From Salpingoeca rosetta (lineage: Eukaryota; Protista; Choanoflagellata): a stretch of DNA of 64,000 nt. The stretch's first letter is position 1; each line of letters begins with the position of its first letter. Positions 47,389 to 58,242 of the stretch are shown in pieces. The notes beneath the pieces are model-generated. The model did not search any database, had not been told where the DNA came from, and worked only from the letters and a program-made list of their open reading frames with translations. The stretch covers positions 136,116 through 200,115 of the forward strand of contig JAWQFM010000011.1 in NCBI GenBank assembly GCA_033442325.1, read 5' to 3'. A program made the translations under genes and the position numbers.

Positions 47389-50351
47389 ATGGCTGGTGGT
47401 GGTGGCGCAAGTGCACGGAAGGAGCTTGTGCGAGCTGTAGGCCTGTGCATGCTCTGGTACCTGGGCTCCATGATGAACAGCATCTTCAGCAAGAGGTGTG
47501 TGTGTGGGAGGGAGAAGGGAGAAGGGGGGTGTGGGCTGCGGGATGACGTTGATGTGATGATGCTGTTGCGTTTGCGTTTGCGTTTGCGTTTTTGCGTTAA
47601 TTGGTGGGTTTGTGACGATTTGTTCATGCAACATGCAGTGCAATGAAGGTGTTTCCGCGGCCCATCACCGTCACCATGGCGCAACTGTTGATGGTCAACA
47701 TCTGCTTGCCGTTTTTCCTGCCAAGCAAGGTGTGAGTGGGAGGGAGGGGGGAGGAGGCTGGGGGAGGGGATCTGTGTATGTGGACGTGTGTGTGTGTGAG
47801 TGTAAACGTGCGCGCGTGTGTGTGTGTGTGTGTGTGTGTGCGTGGTGCTCACGCGGGTTGATGCGTGCTACAATGGTGTGTCACGTGCTTTTAATTCAGA
47901 TGCCAAGGCTATCGCGAAAGGATTGGACCTCGTGGGTGATTCCACTGACGGTTCTCAAGATTGTGGTGAGCCTGTCATCACAGATCAGCATCCTCAAGGT
48001 CCCCGTCGCCTACGCTCACACAGGTACGCGCGCCTGCACACGCGATCTCTCACGCTTCACTTGGTGGGCTTGCTGCTCTCAATGCGAACACTCACAGTGG
48101 TGCTGATGTGATGTCTGCTGTTGGTGGTGTATTGCTGGTGTGCTCATTCCTTCAACGACGGGCGAACACCAGTCAAGGTAAAGCTGCACATGCGTTTGTG
48201 TGGAGTGCTCGGTCGCGTGTGTGGCCATGTGCGTGCGATTTGATGTGTGCACATGCCAGACACCACACTGGTAGCACCTTGGTTCATTCTGACAGTCGCT
48301 GTTGTTTCTGCGCTGTTCGCTTCGTTTTGGCAGGGCATGATGCCAATCTTCACGGTGTTTCTATCCAAGGTCTTCCTGAACCAGCACCACCCTCTCCTCG
48401 CATACATTAGCCTCATCCCCATCATCAGTGGTAATGCGTGTCATCATGTGTGTGCGTGGGGGGGGGGGCGTGTGTGTGTGTGCGTGGGGGGGCGGTGTGT
48501 GTGTGTGTGTGTGTGTATGTGTGTGTGTGCGTGTGTGCGTGGGTGTTTGGGTGCACTTCCCTGTCGTTTCGTATTCCTCTCATGCATGCTTGCATGCATC
48601 CATCTGCTGTCATTGCAGGCGTCGTTATTGCGTCGGTGACTGAGCTGCAGTTTGACCTGCTGGGCCTCATCAGTGCCCTCGTGGCCACGTTCACATTCGC
48701 CATCCAAAACATCTTCTCAAAGAAGGTCCGTGTTGCGTGTGTGTATGTGTGTGTGTATGTGTGTGTGTGTGTGCAGTGGAGTGTAGTGTGGTGTGGTGTA
48801 GTGTTTGGGGAGAAAGCGTGTCGTGGACACGGGAAAGGGGTGGCCGACTGTGCGTGTGTACTGCGCGCGAATACTCACGTGTCCACCATGCCACTTGCTT
48901 TCTTTTGTTTGTTTTTTTTCTTCGTAATTGTCTGCAATCACGGCAGGTGATGAAAAAGGGGGTGCATCACATCAGCATCTTGCTGCTTGTGAGTCAGAGC
49001 GCGTTTGTTGCGCTCCTGCCCTATTGGCTCTGGAACGAAGGCACAGACATCCTCTTTGGCGACACCTTTACCTCGCTCGGGGACCAGGTGAGGGCGGTGG
49101 TCGTCGGCTGTTGGCACCGTGGAGGGGTGTTTGGGGCATCTGTGCTGGCAGTCGTTGTGATCACATCACATCACGTCACGTCACGTCACGTCACGTCACG
49201 TGTGCTTGCACTCACATGCACACGCACATACATGCACACGCACATGCACACGCACATGCACATGCACACATGCAGGCGTTTGTGGTGCTCTATGAGATGG
49301 CGCTGTGTGGACTTTGCAGTGCAATTCAAACCATCGCTGCATTCACCTTTCTCTCATACGTCACGCCAGTCACTTACTCGGTGAGCTCAAGCACATGTAA
49401 CTTCATCACTTGCTCACCTGCTTGCTTGCTTGCTTGCAGGTACAACAAACCAAAGCACAATCCCGCTCGCCTTGTTACATAATTGATGACGTTCACTTGT
49501 TGTTGTGGGGCTGCAGGTTGCGAATGTTGCCAAGAGGATTGTGATTATCGTTGCGTCGATGCTGTTCTTCCAGAATCCCGCCACGCCCGCCAACATTGCC
49601 GGCATTGCCATCTCAATCGTGCGTGATGGTGGTGGTGGTGGTTGCGTTGGGAACGGATGTTTTATCACATGTGTGTCACTGAATCACGCAAGCTTGCCCA
49701 AGCTTACGCTCTCACACAAGCGTATACAAGCTCGCACCCACTCACGCACTCACACACACTCACACAAGCTTACGCACCCACACAAGCTTACGCACTCACA
49801 CAAGCTTACGCACTCACACAAGCTTACGCACTCACACAAGCTTACGCACTCACACAAGCTTGCGCACTCACACAAGCTTACGCGCCCACACAAGCTTACG
49901 CACCCACACAAGCTTACGCACCCACACAAGCTTACGCACTCACACAAGCTTACGCACCCACACAAGCTTACGCACCCACAAGCTTACGCACTCACACAAG
50001 CTTACGCACCCACACAAGCTTACGCACCCACAAGCTTACGCACTCACACAAGCTTACGCACCCACACAAGCTTACGCACCCACAAGCTTACGCACTCTCA
50101 CCCACACGCAATCACAGTGTGGGATTGCGCTGTACAACAAGTCGAAGCTGGATGAACGGCGACGAACACAAATGCAGCAGCAGCTCGCCATGGACGAGGC
50201 AAAGTGGGGCGGCGGTGGTGGTGGTGGTGGTGTCATGAACGGGTACAACGGCGCACACCACCAGCAACAGCAGCAGCCCTCGTTCTTTGCTAATCAACAC
50301 TACACCAGTGGTGGAAAGCGAAAGCCGTTTGGCCCGCTCCACGTCGTTTGA
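47389..50351 (+). CDS. SLC35E1: Triose-phosphate/nucleotide-sugar transporter family, SLC35E1-like
   Basis: [100 protein letters not shown]. Stop at 50351. Confidence 0.9.
49690..50100. repeat. 18-20-bp minisatellite (cacacaagcttacgcac[t/c]) in the last intron of the SLC35E1-like gene
   Basis: About 20 tandem near-identical units. Confidence 0.95.
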
Positions 50352-50607: not shown

Positions 50608-53600
50608 ATGGCTTCGCAACAACAGCCAGAACAGCAGTAGTACGTGTGTATTGGCAGGGGCTCTGCTAGTAGTCTTCTGGTTGTGTGTCAGCCGTGTCCT
50701 CGTCATGAAGCCCTTGTTCCAACCCATGCCCTGCTAACCCTCCTCTTGTCTTGTGTCTTGCTATCTTTTCCACCTGTACATCCTCTTTACTTCTTTGTTT
50801 GGTGCTTGGTGTCTGTCGTGTGCTGCCATACTGCTCGTTCGTTGAGATGTGTTGGTTCTTTGGTTGGGCCAGTTCAAGTGCGTTTCTGCGTGTACTCACA
50901 CACTCACGTTGAACCTTCTGCTTGTGGATTGTGGATTGCAGTGAACTATGGTTCAAAATCCTCCTTGTTGGAGCCGTTGCTGGCAAGACCAATTTGATGG
51001 TGCGAATGATTGATGACCATTTTCAAGTAAGCTGCCAGCCTGGCCCATACGCGCAAGCACGAGAGTACTCGACCGCTTGTGTAGTAGGGTATTCTATACA
51101 ATTGAGTGATTGTGCACCACGACTCGAAGGCAATTGTGAGTTGGTCTCACTTTCCGCGACCTGTCCGCGATTCTTGACAGGGTTCCAACAAGCACACCAT
51201 GGGCGCCGATGTTGTAAGTCTTCGTTTTCCTGTCTTCAATATCTGACGCATTGCTTCGAGACACGAATAATGGACTTGCTACCATCCCTAGGTTGTTTCT
51301 TCACCTCGAATTCGTGTTCGTCCACAGGGGCTCCGACTGCTTGAGTTTCACGGCAAACAAATCTACCTGCAATTAGTACGTTCGACGATTTCTTCCTACC
51401 GATGTCCAATTGCGTGCTCTGATGCCATCTCTGTACACCCAGCCAGCGCTATAACATTCCTCACGTCCTCATACATGCAATGTTACATGTCTCACGCACT
51501 CTGCACTTCCCCTAATTTCTTCTAACATTGTGTGGACAGTGGGATACGGGTGCAAACGCTTCGTATTCGAGTCTCAAGCGAATTTATTTCAAACATGCAC
51601 GGGGTGCCTTCCTCGTCTACGACGTCACGGATCGCGTGAGGCATTCATAGTGTGCACATGTGGGCATTCGGATACTGCATTGTCTTTGTCGCACACAATG
51701 CCGGCATCGCCATTGTCACACAGGCTGATGCCAACGGTGGATCATGAATGCGTGCACAACATCCTCGCGCAGCGTCTCACTGAAGATTGGTACGTTTTGT
51801 GGTATCGTTTGATGACATGGTCACATGTCACCTCCATTTCTTGTCAACCTTTCTCCTTTCTCGCAGTCTACCTTTCGCGGAATTCTTGAAACCTTACAAG
51901 CAATACGCGCGTTTGCGGATCCCAAGTGCTGCGTGGCCCTGATTGGAAACAAGTGCGATCTCGAACACCGCCGAGAAGTGTCGTTTGAAGAAGGCCAGAG
52001 GTTCGCGATGGAGAATGGCCTCGTGTTTTTCGAAACGAGCGCGAAGACAGGCGAAAATGTGGAAAAAGCATTTCAGGAGCTCACAGCTCGCGTGGTGCAT
52101 CGGCTCGAAACAGAAGATCCACCAGCTGCGACACTGCACGACGCTTGCCGACAAGATACAACATTCAACAGGTTCAACGCTGTGTCGAGATTGCTCCACC
52201 TTGGCCAGGATCCAAACAGGCGCGATAGTCAGGTAGCTAGCAGTGCACGCATGTGCAGTTACGCACCAGACACCTGTGCCTTTTGAAGACAGTTTTAGGC
52301 ATGTACTCTGGGTGTTTCACAAAGCCACAGAATGCATGTATTCTTGTGCTTTGAGACCTGGCAGCAGACTCATTCGCTCATGACTCCCTGCGATTAATCA
52401 TTCAGGAGAGGCTTCCTCTACACATTGCGAGCGAAAGCGACGCGTCTGATGTTGTGCAGCTGTTGCTCAAGCACAGCGCCGATATCAATGCAAAGGATAA
52501 AGAGGTGTTGACCACGCTGTGCGTAGCAGATGCATGCATGTGTGTGTCTGTCTGTTCTTGTCTCTCTGTCGATACGCGTCTAATATTTCACCCGCTCGGA
52601 TTCACCACACCTCATTCCCTCGTGCTACTCCACCCCCACCAGGGATGGACGGCCCTCCACTACGCCGCGTTCAACGACCGTGCGGATGTCGTGCGCATAC
52701 TCCTGGAACAGGGCGCTGACACCACCATCAAGCACCGCTTTGTGAGTGAAGCATACAGCTGGTCGTTGCGACACCACGTGCTCTTGTTGTGTTAGTTGCT
52801 TGATGTGCGTGTTGAACTGGATCGCTGTCACCCAACCTCTTTTTTGTGTCAAATCTGCCTTCCTGTTCATGCCCCTCCCATCATCTGCTTTCGCCACACA
52901 CGCACGCACGCACACACACGCACACACACACACACACACGCACACACACACACACACACATACACACACATTCCATGCGTGATTGACAACAACAGCTGTT
53001 CGGCAAGACGGCTCTTGACCTCGCTGTCAGCCGTGGGCACAGTGATGTCATTAAGCTGCTTCGCAACCCGCAGGTGTGTGTGCTATGCTTGTGATGTATT
53101 GTTGTGTTGCTGTGTCATAAGCTCTGCTTGTTCAAACTCCATCATTCCCTCCTCCTCCTCCTCCTCCTCCTCCTACCACGCACATTCATTCTGTTGTGTG
53201 CACTTGCCCTGTTCACGCATATTTCATCTCACCTGCGCAGGCTGTGCAAGCACGACCACCATCTTCACCACAACCTGCATCCCTCCATGATGCCTGCAAG
53301 CACGGTGACACTGCGCGTGTGTCTGCACTCATTGACAAAGGCAATGTGGACGTATCCGAACAGGATACGCAGGTACGTGTTTGAATACACGGGTGTGTGT
53401 GTGTGTGTGTGTTGTCTCCATTCCCTGGTGCAGATGAACGCACCAGTGTATTCGCCAGACTTGTTGCCTTTGCTCATGCTTGTTTGCTATCTTGTTCACG
53501 TTGATCATGGCTGCTTGCATGTGCAGAGCGATACACCGCTGCATGTTGCCTGCAGGCACAATCACGCCGCTGTTGTGCAGCTGTTGCTGCAGAAAGGCGC

Positions 53601-56600
53601 CAACATCACCACAAAGAATAACAAGGTGTGGCATGTCGAACCGGACACTTTCACTGCACATGTTATGCATTCTGTGTGCATCTGCTGTGCAGTTTTGTGC
53701 GCGCGCCGCTGTATCAGCATTCGCGGGTCGTGCAGTGCATTGGTGCATGCGTGCACGAGACTTTGCACCGACACCGTGGGAATGTGTGTGTGTATGTATT
53801 TGTACTCACCCGCCAGACTGCCTTGTTGTGTCTGAATGATTGCAGGGTCAGACACCTTTGGATGTGGCAAAGGCAAGCGGTCACAAAGCCATTACATCCA
53901 TGACAGCGCTCCAACCCACAACTGCCACGACACCAAGCAGCGACAGCGACCAGCAACCACCTGAAGATAGAGATGAGAAGGGAGATGAAGAGGACCCGGC
54001 CACGGGTGAATTGGACGATGAGACGCAAGCCAGATTACAGCAGGAGAAGGTATATGCGTGAATGCGCGCGTATGTGCGTGCGTGTGCGTGGGCGCGTGAG
54101 TGTGCATGAGTGTGAATTCAATCGTGCACGCTTGCTTCGTCACTCCCTCCCTCTCTGTGCTTGCTTCCGTGCAATACGAGCTCGTACATCTCGTCTGACT
54201 TGCTCACCCAACATCACGCCACAACACACAGGCAAAGGAAGCGTACGTGGCAAACGTGAGGCGGATCATGCAGGAGATTGCCGAGCGGTGCGACCAGCAG
54301 ATGGCGGGGCGGGCAAAGCTGAACTTGGTTGGCCAGGGCCGTGCGGGGAAGACGACAACGCTCCGCTCTCTTCGGGGCTTGGGCTTCAATAAGGACGAGC
54401 ACTCGACCAAAGGCGCTGCAACGCACGACATGAATGTCACCGTGGATTCCATGGACGTTTACCAATGGAAGGTGAGCGTGAGAGGATGCGCTGTAAGTGT
54501 GGGTGCTTGCGTGTGTGTGGGTGCTTGCGTGTGTGTGTGTGATGTTCCAAAACATCATGCACGGGCTGATGTCGTGGCGGCGTTGTCACTTGGTGTTGTC
54601 ACACGATGCTGTGTGTTTGGCCTTTCACCAGAACGAAAAGCATTCCCTCCTCATCAACCACCACACTCTCAACACCACCTTCACTTCGCCTTCACCATTG
54701 CAGGCTGTGACTGGCTTTCTGTCTGAGGTTGCGCGGAGCCTGCGGGACACGGCGCTGGCGCAGGCGGGCGGTATGGACGCGGTGATGCGGATGAAGATGG
54801 AGGAAGCACATAGGCTGCGGGAGGAGCGCGTTGCACTGCAGCTCGTCAGCGAGACGGAAGCAGACGCACCGGTGGCGGCCAAAGGGGATGTGCATGGTGA
54901 TGAAGCTGGTCTTGATGCATCCGGTGAGCAGGTGCTGGCGAGCGGCAATGAACTTGGTGCACATGTCGTTGATGATGACGATGATGACGATGATGATGAT
55001 TATGATGATGACAGTGACGGTGGTGGAACTGAGACTGCTGATGCTGCTGAGCCCACATCAGCGTCATTGCCATCGCCACCCGCACTCGCAGCATCGTCTG
55101 CAGTGATGACTGCCGGTATGGGAACCGTGCCCAACATCTCAACTGAGGAGATTGAGAACGCGATCAAGGATCTGAATCTGGACACGACGTTCGGGGAGGG
55201 CAACGCCAGGGTGACGTTCAAAGTATTTGACCTGGGAGGCCAGTCCACCTTCTACATTTTCCACCCTTTCTTCCTCACCAAGTGAGTTACTGTGTGTGTG
55301 TGTATGTGTGTGTGTGTGTGTGTATGTGTGTGTGTGTGTGTCTGTCTGCGTGGGTACGTGCTGCCTGCTGCCTGCTGTCCACCGCTGCCCTCCCCACACC
55401 CTCCTCACCCCACTCACCCAACCCCATCTTCACTCTCCACACCCACACCAGGTACGCGGTGTACCTGCTGGTGTTCTCGATGGAGGACCTGCTGCACCAA
55501 GACGAGAGCAAGCGGGCAGAGACGTGGGAGTTTATGGAGCACTGGTTGTCTTCCCTCCACCTTCACGCCAAGGGCGCACCCGTCCTCATCGTTGGCACCT
55601 TCGCTGATGTGGTCAGCAAGCGTAAGCAGCACGAGAACATCTCGCGTGACATCTACAGCCGCCTGCGCCACAACCCGGCGTTCCCTGGCGTCATCCACAA
55701 CGACAAGCATGGTCTGTGGTTCTGGCCCGTCGACAACACCAAGTCCATCCGTGATCCCATGATCCAGGACCTGCGCCAGACCATCTCCTCCACAGCACTG
55801 GCGCAGGAGTACGTGAGCCAGGAGGTGGCTGTGCCCTACCTCCACCTCTACGACAAACTCCACGCCATCGCCCGCGACGAGAAGCGACCGCTGCTCACCT
55901 TTGACGACGTCGTGGATATTGCGCGCACGTGTGGGCTGCGCACACGCCAGGAGACAAAAGCCTGCCTGCAGTTCCTGCACCTGTACTCGATGGTGCTGTA
56001 CTACGACCACGTGCCAGGCATGGAAAACTATGTGATCCTGAGTCCGCAGTGGGCCGTGGACACGATGACGCGCGTCATCCGCAACTTTGACTTGCACCGT
56101 GACGAACGTGATTGGGAGGCGAGGGCCGTTGGTGCGCAGCTGTGGGACGACTTAGTTGATCGCGGCATCCTGCACCGTCGTCTGCTGGAGGTGCTGTGGA
56201 AGGATGTACGAGATGACTTGATTGAGCCCTTTCTCCAACTCATGATGGAGTATGGGTTGTGCATGGACTACACACCGCCCAGATCAGCAGAGAGCAGCGA
56301 CAGCAGCAGCGACAACTCTGTACATCATGATGATGAGCAGCAGCGCGAACACCAGCAGTATCTGGTGCCTGCCATTCTGCCGATGGTGTTGGACACGCCA
56401 TCAGACCTGCCTTCGTCCGTGACGTTGAGCGTGTGCGCAGCACAACACGTGCACAAGTACGCTGGGCACGAGCCCAACACGGCCTACATCAGCTTCCGCC
56501 TGACCCCGCGTGCTTCCGATGCCCACGTGAGTGCCGAGGACATGCAGCGAACATCATTCTTTCCCGAAGGCTTGTTTGCCGTGGTGCTGGCCCATGTCCT

Positions 56601-57025
56601 GAGATACATTCAACCCAGCACCTCATCCACGCCCATGTTGAGCCGCACCCACGTGGTTGTGTTTGTTGGCGAAGCCGAGGTTGAGCTGCAGCTTGTGCCG
56701 GCTGTAGGCGGGATCAAAATCAAGATTGCACAAGCACGTCCTCGCGCGCTGCTGCACATGCTTTGTGACATCATCGTTGAAGCCATCAGGCAGCGCTATC
56801 ATGACCTGAAGCCTTATGTCCTGCTGCCACATGACGACAAGACGCTGCTGTTCTTTGAGGACGTGCGTCGTCACCACAACAACAAGAGGGCACTTCGTGT
56901 TGGCCGCTCACAACTCTTGTCACCCGACGATCTCATCGCCAAGTACGGCCCTCTCCTGCCCGTCCTCGGCCTGCAGGAAAATTACGATGTCTTCATCAGC
57001 TACAGGTGAGTGAGTGAGTGAGTGA

Positions 57026-57061
<36 letters not shown>

Positions 57062-58242
57062 GTGTGTGTGTGTGTGTGTCTGTACCAACTGCCGTCTCTC
57101 TCTCACTTGCCCCTCACTTGACACATCCTCGCACGCACACCCCTTTCCCAAACATACCACAGGCAACGCGGCAACCGAGGTCTGGTGCTGACGTTGCACC
57201 CAAAGTTGGAGCACCACGGCTTGGTGGCCTTCGTGGATGTCAACAACTTGGAAACAGGCGTCAACTTCAAGCACGCGTGCTTGACAGCTCTTCAGCACAG
57301 CGTGGTCGCCTGCCCCGTTTTGTCTGTCGCTGCAATCCATCAGATGCGCTCGCTCGGCGACACTGACACGTGCGACAACGTGTTGCTGGAGTGGATGGCA
57401 ATGTTGGAGCTGCAGCAGCTGGCGCACAAGCACCCAGACAAGATCCGCCTCCGTCGCATCGTCCCTCTCTTTCTTGGCAGCGGCTGGCACGACAGCAACC
57501 ATACCATGAGTGTGGCGTCGGCGAGCGAGTACGATTCGCCCGAGTACATGAAGCGGCTGGCAGAGTCGCTGCCGGATGTTGTGAGTGAGAAGACTGCAGC
57601 ATCCCTCGATCAGTTCTTCACGCAGGTGCTGCACCTGCCGCCACCACAACAGCACAAGACCGTGCGCGAGACTGTGCTGTCTCTGTTTGACATTGACGGC
57701 GTCATGTCCTTTCAACGCCGAGTTGACCGAGGAGCGGATGCGGCAAGGTTTGCAGAGCAAGTGCGCCAAGTTGTCTCGGCTGGAAGCAGTAGCCGAGGTG
57801 TGCAGCGGCCCACCCAAACGTCGCAAGAAGCAACATCGTCGCTCCCTCCGTCAACCCAACCGGTATTGAGAGTGAGATATGGAGTATGCGTTATGTTTGA
57901 GCACTGCCGTTGTCTGTACTGTGAACACATACCCATGCTTTGCCTCACCTTGGCTGCCCAACCCTTCTTCGTGCATCTTTGTTTCGTTGTCCTCACAACT
58001 CTTGCCTGCAGGCACCTGCTGACGTGTCCACACTGTCTGCCGATCTCCGTGAGTGGCTGCAATCCGCTGACCTCCTGGCCAAAGTTGGGCCCGCCCTCAT
58101 TGGTGTTGGGGTGGAGAAAATGGACGACCTTGGCCGAGCAATGCGGTTGATGGGGGATGACTTCAAGGCAGAAATGAAGGCTGCTGGTGCCAAGCCGTTT
58201 CACGTTGCCTGTCTTCTTGAAGCCTTTGAAGCGGAGCAATGA
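50608..58242 (+). CDS. Roco-family protein: degenerate Rab-like GTPase + ankyrin repeats + Roc + COR + TIR + SAM-like (about 1,550 aa, 17 exons)
   Basis: Phase-compatible GT-AG exons: 50608-50639, 50942-51026, 51181-51213, 51328-51375, 51540-51635, 51867-52232, 52406-52504, 52643-52741, 52996-53073, 53241-53372, 53527-53625, 53846-54049, 54232-54471, 54704-55281, 55452-57005, 57163-57862, 58012-58242. Rab: FKILLVG, LIGNKCDL, FFETSAKTGENV. ANK: GWTALHYAA, TPLHVAC. Roc: KLNLVGQGRAGKTT, FDLGGQSTFYIFHPFFLT, PVLIVGTFAD. COR: VILSPQW, YLVPAILP, FPEGLF. TIR: YDVFISYR, DNVLLEW. Confidence 0.85.

Follow-up and report, generated by a model that had tools for sequence, protein, structure and literature searches.

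A kinase-less Roco protein of Salpingoeca rosetta that joins a Rab-like domain to a Roc-COR-TIR chassis

We describe here a gene of the choanoflagellate Salpingoeca rosetta which lies on the + strand at positions 50608-58242 of a 64,000-nucleotide stretch (contig JAWQFM010000011.1 of assembly GCA_033442325.1, positions 136,116 to 200,115 of the forward strand), hereafter the window, to whose numbering the coordinates below refer. The gene is real, expressed and single, and its product is a Roco protein lacking a kinase, in which a degenerate Rab2/14/4-like domain is followed by seven ankyrin (ANK) repeats, Roc, COR-A, a putative COR-B, TIR and SAM. With moderate confidence we read this protein as an NLR-like device that may work in defence, cell death or stress signalling. 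The unusual part is the integration of the Rab, found in three S. rosetta genes and also, though with another Rab, in Salpingoeca infusionum; the Roc-COR-TIR chassis and the family were already public.

On the + strand the locus appears as short stop-free pieces in alternating frames, with stretches rich in GT/CA microsatellites between them. We rebuilt 17 exons from the sequence; all 16 introns are of the GT..AG type and measure 114-305 nt, and the joined coding sequence of 4671 nt, closed by its only stop, encodes 1556 aa. Two successive searches, the first with exon 15, identified the product as XP_004994429.1 / EGD72606.1 / UniProt F2U898 (P0170), recorded as "GTPase [Salpingoeca rosetta]" with 1557 aa. 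The rebuilt model and F2U898 differ at positions 9-11 alone, by an additional residue in the latter and a substitution; the lengths differ by one residue because the exon-1 donor is at 50639 in the NCBI model and at 50636 in ours, a 3-nt choice with both options in frame. The initial annotation of this DNA had proposed 17 phase-compatible exons in one stop-free frame, and this model was recovered, its product equalling the NCBI protein except for the donor choice. The two fusions that it had placed inside single exons are also there: exon 51867-52232 reads from the Rab-like domain into the ankyrin repeats, and exon 55452-57005 contains the COR-to-TIR junction, as it encodes the first TIR strand, YDVFISYR. 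Nearly every intron holds a GT/CA or similar microsatellite (52891-52976, 53139-53184, 53383-53421, 54480-54545, 55290-55345, 57006-57080 and others), and on both strands they generate long open frames that are spurious. The features of the gene are the following:

50608..50636, + strand: exon 1, start codon; the NCBI exon ends at 50639
50942..51026, + strand: exon 2, Rab-like strand 1 and P-loop GAVAGKT (50970-50990)
51181..51213, + strand: exon 3, Rab-like switch I (HTMGADV)
51328..51375, + strand: exon 4, Rab-like strands 2 and 3
51540..51635, + strand: exon 5, Rab-like switch II, WDTGAN (D..N at 51543-51557) where WDTAGQ is expected
51867..52232, + strand: exon 6, C-terminal half of the Rab-like domain (NKCD and SAK intact), unbroken into ankyrin repeat 1
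52406..52504, + strand: exon 7, ankyrin repeat 2
52643..52741, + strand: exon 8, ankyrin repeat 3
52996..53073, + strand: exon 9, ankyrin repeat 4
53241..53372, + strand: exon 10, short linker and ankyrin repeat 5
53527..53625, + strand: exon 11, ankyrin repeat 6
53846..54049, + strand: exon 12, ankyrin repeat 7 and acidic linker
54232..54471, + strand: exon 13, N-terminal part of Roc with P-loop GQGRAGKT (54331-54354)
54704..55281, + strand: exon 14, Roc with an acidic insert of about 170 aa, followed by the G3 motif DLGGQ
55452..57005, + strand: exon 15, C-terminal half of Roc, COR-A, putative COR-B and first TIR strand
55816..56417, + strand: 602-bp tract within exon 15 (COR-A), DNA 100% identical to a paralogue on contig C8
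57163..57862, + strand: exon 16, remaining TIR and Ser/Thr/Pro-rich linker; codon of the catalytic-type Glu at 57389-57391 (E1324 of F2U898)
58012..58242, + strand: exon 17, SAM domain and TGA stop

Two stranded RNA-seq runs, a quarter of each being read, were aligned to 52100-58099, a region that covers exons 6-17 and 11 junctions. We found spliced reads at nine of these junctions, and in all of them the first mates map to the minus strand, as RNA from the + strand gives in usual stranded libraries. The counts in run 1 and run 2 are:

Exons 6 to 7, 52232>52406: 3 and 0
Exons 7 to 8, 52504>52643: 1 and 3
Exons 8 to 9, 52741>52996: 4 and 7
Exons 9 to 10, 53073>53241: 5 and 13
Exons 10 to 11, 53372>53527: 4 and 6
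Exons 11 to 12, 53625>53846: 1 and 6
Exons 12 to 13, 54049>54232, ankyrin to Roc: 5 and 7
Exons 13 to 14, 54471>54704: 6 and 8
Exons 16 to 17, 57862>58012, TIR to SAM: 13 and 11

Two adjacent genes, one for Rab-ANK and the other for Roc-COR-TIR-SAM, could have been wrongly merged into one model. Some room for this is left by the reads, which cover the junctions from exons 6 to 7 onwards and among which those of exons 14 to 15 (55281>55452) and 15 to 16 (57005>57163) are unlisted. Both of these introns carry microsatellites, which the read method skips, and both junctions fall within domains (Roc and TIR) that are continuous in a protein derived from an S. infusionum transcript, with FLTK/YAVY identical. 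However, in both runs stranded reads are spliced from the last ankyrin exon into the first exon of Roc, so that the transcripts do not split the locus and the single gene originally claimed stands. In addition, there is no in-frame stop, no alternative junctions are listed, the NCBI model is identical, and in S. infusionum a Rab-Roc-COR-TIR-SAM frame lies in one assembled transcript. We therefore regard a two-gene artefact as essentially excluded, its probability being very low.

Searched as a whole against Pfam, the protein matches Ras at residues 16-174 (6.5e-52), ankyrin models at residues 188-400 (Ank_2, 5.5e-38), Roc (2.8e-33), COR-A at residues 859-1038 directly after Roc (9.1e-18, 65 bits against a cut-off of 35.3) and TIR_2 at residues 1243-1353 (1.6e-7, 32.3 bits against a cut-off of 28), while no NACHT or NB-ARC STAND ATPase appears at E values up to 1. 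The seven ankyrin repeats read from the sequence are arranged in two blocks, mostly with one repeat per exon, and part of this region matches the Pfam LRRK2 ANK model. The Roc motifs GQGRAGKT, DLGGQ and TFAD could be read, and the Roc-COR part matches the structures of LRRK2 Roc and Roc-COR and of the Chlorobium Roco at about 1e-7 to 3e-9. Between the first Roc strands and DLGGQ there is an acidic low-complexity insert of about 170 aa that includes a run of Asp (54704-55220, exon 14); an insert occupies the same place in the S. infusionum transcript, and it is poorly conserved in paralogues. Together with the SAM domain, recognised by profile and fold, these matches bear out the order Rab-ANK-Roc-COR-TIR-SAM that had first been proposed.

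An AlphaFold model of residues 1235-1557, built with 25 homologues, reached a mean predicted local distance difference test (pLDDT) score of 87, and its first 225 residues match the TIR domains of the plant NLRs RUN1, L6 and RPP1 and of SARM1 with a Foldseek probability of 1.0 and target-normalised TM-scores of 0.6-0.76. Over 219 aa, the TIR shares 74% identity with the one in another S. rosetta protein, F2UB80 (P0157, 1352 aa). A 2026 preprint describes a S. rosetta TIR that produces cyclic ADP-ribose (cADPR) and, in the legend of a domain-architecture figure, defines Roc and COR (bioRxiv 10.64898/2026.04.20.719644); residues 1034-1255 of F2UB80, with 1118 as catalytic residue, are given there as active and positive for cADPR (Table S4). 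E1324 of F2U898 lines up with E1118 of F2UB80, and at least 90% of the 25 homologues show conservation in this alignment column. As judged from this alignment, the TIR keeps a catalytic-type glutamate, and this copy may be active as well.

The last 75 residues are identified as a SAM domain by profile and by predicted fold. Among the homologous tails, 15 of 22 match SAM_2, and the family profile of the tail matches SAM structures (ANKS1A, 2.3e-6; SARM1 SAM, 5.6e-4). A separate model of the tail has a pLDDT of 88 and five helices, and with an exhaustive aligner its best fold matches are SAM domains, led by that of p73 (Z 7.9, root-mean-square deviation 1.6 over 60 residues), most of the next 25 alignment rows also being SAM domains. 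Foldseek with the SAM tail alone gave nothing significant, the Shank2 SAM standing at rank 14. A feature search of the ESM Atlas with the tail returned scores of 0.84-0.88 from mixed families, which serve as leads only.

Judged by its sequence, the N-terminal domain is Rab-like in fold but degenerate, departing from Rabs in some of their defining features. Its nearest structures are Rab2A (8.3e-41), Rab14 (2e-40) and Rab4 (about 5e-40), followed by Rab1A (8e-35) some 20 bits lower. The NKCD and SAK motifs are kept. The P-loop GAVAGKT is one residue short of GxxxxGK[ST], and its HMMER alignments with Rab2A and Rab14 need a gap of one residue; in switch II, the DTAGQ of Rabs is replaced by DTGAN, which departs from DxxGQ. 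A prenylated C-terminal tail is impossible, because the last Rab helix continues into ankyrin repeat 1 inside exon 6. Given the short P-loop, the altered switch II and the impossibility of this tail, it is doubtful that the built-in Rab plays the part which separate Rabs play in activating LRRK2.

Two other loci of the S. rosetta genome match the exon that holds the Rab-ankyrin junction, one on contig C6 (72%), 3.3 kb upstream of a Roc-COR exon, and the other on contig C5 (44%), adjoining another Roc-COR exon. The C6 copy has the order Rab-like, ANK, Roc, COR, TIR in common with F2U898, and its P-loop (GRDAGKT) lacks one residue too, but switch II reads DTNGQE instead of DTGAN. The C5 copy runs Rab-like, Roc, COR, TIR, SAM and, unlike F2U898, lacks the ankyrin block; it has a canonical P-loop (GDTQVGKS), DSGGQE, and MKSD in place of NKxD. 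The annotated protein of this copy (P0161) does not include the Rab and ends in TIR-SAM_2. Along the proteins, identity among the Rab-bearing S. rosetta copies forms a mosaic. In S. infusionum, a single open frame derived from a transcript, EP00049_P000833 (P0175), encodes Rab, Roc, COR, TIR and SAM_2, its Roc having the insert seen in F2U898. The Rab of this protein is clearly of the Rab1 type (Rab1A, 1.8e-65; Rab2A, 3.5e-46), with canonical P-loop and switch II and AYAD as G4, and ankyrin repeats are absent. Thus, on sequence grounds, the same chassis carries one type of Rab in S. rosetta and another in S. infusionum, and each of the four Rab-bearing copies has at least one deviant GTPase motif.

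A search for long proteins with a Rab-ANK N-terminus returned, besides F2U898, P0180, P0179 (Roc...Ras) and a circularly permuted Ras, none of them with COR or TIR. P0180, an unrelated eukaryotic protein of 1656 aa from an ENA contig, carries a Rab-like domain at its N-terminus together with many ankyrin repeats and another GTPase, of the MMR_HSR1/dynamin type, and so presents a parallel Rab-ANK-GTPase layout with neither COR nor TIR.

The Rab-like domain may be a decaying, functionless passenger brought in by exon shuffling, the protein then working like its ANK-Roc-COR-TIR-SAM sisters. In this sense, C8 (P0168), the copy that comes closest over the C-terminal half, is laid out alike but lacks the Rab, and GTPase motifs erode stepwise over the three S. 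rosetta copies, from a canonical P-loop with DSGGQE in C5, through a short P-loop with DTNGQE in C6, to a short P-loop with DTGAN in F2U898. Nevertheless, the frame is maintained through five small exons, NKCD, SAK and most fold-defining residues are kept (with the strong Ras match given above), and the retention of a Rab in three copies together with a different, Rab1-like one in S. infusionum argues for selection. We consider a passenger quite improbable.

Another possibility, put forward tentatively and with low probability, is that the domain serves as an integrated bait that reports bacterial proteins which modify host Rabs. Bacteria eaten by choanoflagellates, or infecting them, would inject Rab-modifying proteins, and a copy of a Rab placed on a Roc-COR switch with a TIR would report the attack. 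It would fit this proposal that two Rab types are carried by one chassis (Rab2/14/4-like in the three S. rosetta genes, Rab1-like in S. infusionum), that the Rab fold is kept while the GTPase chemistry erodes, and that the family behaves like a receptor family. If true, the bait would do on a GTPase switch, in the sister group of animals, what integrated decoys do in plant NLRs.

The size of this family was estimated in the genome (55.4 Mb, 68 contigs), where exon 15 has 52 matches, at least 35 of them full-length with 53-91% identity. Annotated layouts include LRR-ANK-Roc-COR-TIR, LRR-Roc-COR-TIR, ANK-Roc-COR-TIR-SAM and Roc-COR with a nucleoside phosphorylase domain, among others. Most members end in TIR, with or without SAM, and their N-termini are swapped between RNI-type LRRs, ankyrin and Rab-like domains; the C-terminal region of F2U898, with its TIR, has matches in about 25 proteins of S. 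rosetta. The paralogues with a common Roc-COR-TIR and exchanged N-termini that the initial annotation suggested looking for were thus found, at no fewer than 35 loci. P0001 (PTSG_02681) is the family member in which Roc-COR is combined with a PNP_UDP_1 phosphorylase domain. Outside the window, at G000:C26:706915-709140 (+), there is a 920-aa frame with a Ras-like stretch (36% to the Rab exon) and TIR_2 (3.7e-12), which may represent a small-GTPase and TIR gene of a different family.

Sequence has been exchanged between copies of the family. Over the paralogues, identity in the Rab, ankyrin and SAM segments lies at 35-58%. Identity to the best paralogue changes along F2U898 as follows:

Rab: 36%
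Ankyrin: about 55%
Roc, N-terminal part: 69%
Roc, C-terminal half: 94-97%, many copies
COR-A: 100%, C8 copy
COR-B: about 81%
TIR: about 81%
SAM: 44%

The 602-bp tract at 55816-56417 that is identical to the C8 copy is flanked by sequence that differs from this copy at 8-25 positions per 100 bp, and likely represents a recent gene conversion, for which it is a candidate. Assembly collapse could also produce such identity. As for the C8 paralogue itself, a continuous tblastn match had suggested COR, TIR and SAM in one exon; this reading was dropped, as the open frame around its exon 15 is only 575 aa and the DNA alignment runs through intron-like sequence. We regard the family as immune-receptor-like because of its at least 35 loci, the differing N-termini, the mosaic identity and the identical tract.

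The results above establish the gene structure, its expression, the domains, the conserved glutamate, the expansion of the family and the exchange between its copies. How F2U898 could work we infer from the families to which its parts belong, and this includes activation by the N-terminus, TIR activity of this copy, SAM-driven assembly and any immune role. The N-terminal module would bind a partner or report a disturbance; the Roc-COR switch would then change either its nucleotide state or the dimer formed through COR; TIR domains would be brought together, probably with the help of SAM; and the assembled TIRs would cleave NAD+, yielding cADPR, in order to signal or else to deplete NAD+. This would be an NLR-like logic running on a GTPase instead of a STAND ATPase. 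The layout of sensor, switch and effector that the initial annotation had likened to an NLR is reasonable in this respect and matches the published logic of Roc-COR, there termed AP-GTPase, although the Roc-COR-TIR chassis is not new.

Several observations weigh against this NLR-like reading or against parts of it. COR-B is weak in Pfam (17.9 bits, below the cut-off of 27), and the last 75 residues alone were not matched by Pfam as SAM. The predicted self-association of two copies of residues 1484-1557 scored 0.01, which is evidence neither way. Read depth is low (about 1-15 with the quarter of each run that was read), and paralogues contribute a large share of the signal from about 55100 to 56300; at positions 56055, 56092 and 56253 all reads carry a letter other than that of the window, more highly expressed paralogues supplying many of the exon 15 reads. 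The window has no immune-gene cluster, and the neighbours of the gene are unremarkable. Finally, the architecture does not prove defence, because the Roco proteins LRRK2 and DAPK1 also act in trafficking and in the cytoskeleton.

In line with this last point, F2U898 might be a housekeeping Roco of trafficking or signalling comparable to LRRK2 and DAPK1, placed by its Rab-like domain and ankyrin repeats on endomembranes or the cytoskeleton, with TIR and SAM acting as a scaffold or making cADPR for calcium and not for defence. Its ANK-Roc-COR core is that of DAPK1, the match to the LRRK2 ANK model is in keeping with such a role, and Rab2, Rab14 and Rab4, whose structures come closest to the Rab-like domain, belong to endosomes or the Golgi. 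Furthermore, cADPR is a calcium-mobilising messenger. However, with its at least 35 paralogues, exchanged N-termini and recent gene conversion, the family does not look like a conserved housekeeping regulator, and the absent prenylation tail, short P-loop and broken switch II make ordinary Rab-style membrane cycling unlikely. We hold a housekeeping role to be unlikely.

The NLR-like reading is thus the one that we favour, and the at least 35 Roc-COR-TIR genes with shuffled N-termini are a good candidate for a choanoflagellate cytosolic surveillance system. Their Rab-bearing members tie together Roco proteins and Rabs (LRRK2), the NAD+ chemistry of TIR domains (SARM1 and plant NLRs) and the idea of integrated decoys. 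S. rosetta is transfectable and editable (PMC7314544, PMC6333174), which makes the questions raised by a Rab-Roco-TIR protein directly testable.

In the surroundings of the gene, the upstream neighbour on the same strand belongs to the triose-phosphate-transporter family (48438-49600, +; TPT, 1.1e-12). Just 3' of it, at about 49700-50150, lies a short-period repeat with repeat frames of the HKLT type.

No paper on F2U898, XP_004994429 or EGD72606 was found in the literature, nor any description of a Rab-fused Roco variant, and nothing relevant came up for Roco, TIR and choanoflagellate combined. The initial annotation had supposed that the architecture was undescribed. This holds for the Rab-fused variant, on which we found no paper; it does not hold for the chassis, described in bacteria and molluscs, and the protein itself is catalogued as F2U898, an outcome which, at database level, the initial annotation had itself counted as refuting. 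In molluscs, proteins with TIR and ROCO are listed for Aplysia (PMC9334734). In bacteria, as set out in the part of the work of Kaur et al. (2021, PMC8195603) used here, fast-evolving N-terminal LRRs are followed by an AP-GTPase (Roc) with COR and by at least 24 alternative C-terminal effectors including TIR, and the AP-GTPase is viewed as the switch of a counter-invader system. Our protein resembles this system in its N-terminal repeats, its Roc-COR switch, a variable C-terminal effector that may be TIR, and many paralogues per genome; it differs in that the described proteins are prokaryotic and that this part of the paper mentions neither a Rab-like domain nor SAM, the likeness considered here being that of the shared domains (PMC8195603).

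Within S. rosetta, F2UB80 (LRR-ANK-Roc-COR-TIR) has in common with F2U898 the Roc-COR-TIR chassis, with 94-97% identity in the C-terminal half of Roc, 74% in TIR and a conserved catalytic glutamate, but it starts with RNI-type LRRs where F2U898 starts with the Rab-like domain, and it is F2UB80 for which cADPR production was assayed. DAPK1 and LRRK2 share the ANK-Roc-COR core, the LRRK2 Roc-COR structures being matched at about 3e-9; unlike them, F2U898 has no kinase or death domain, its output is TIR-SAM, and the Rab is in the chain instead of being a separate partner. SARM1 also combines a TIR of the NAD+-cleaving type with SAM, its TIR being the best PDB sequence match (0.0016) and its SAM being among the profile and fold matches; however, SARM1 is arranged ARM-SAM-SAM-TIR, while in F2U898 the TIR precedes a single SAM and regulation by Roc-COR is predicted instead of ARM. 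With NLR/STAND receptors, F2U898 shares a resemblance in layout only.

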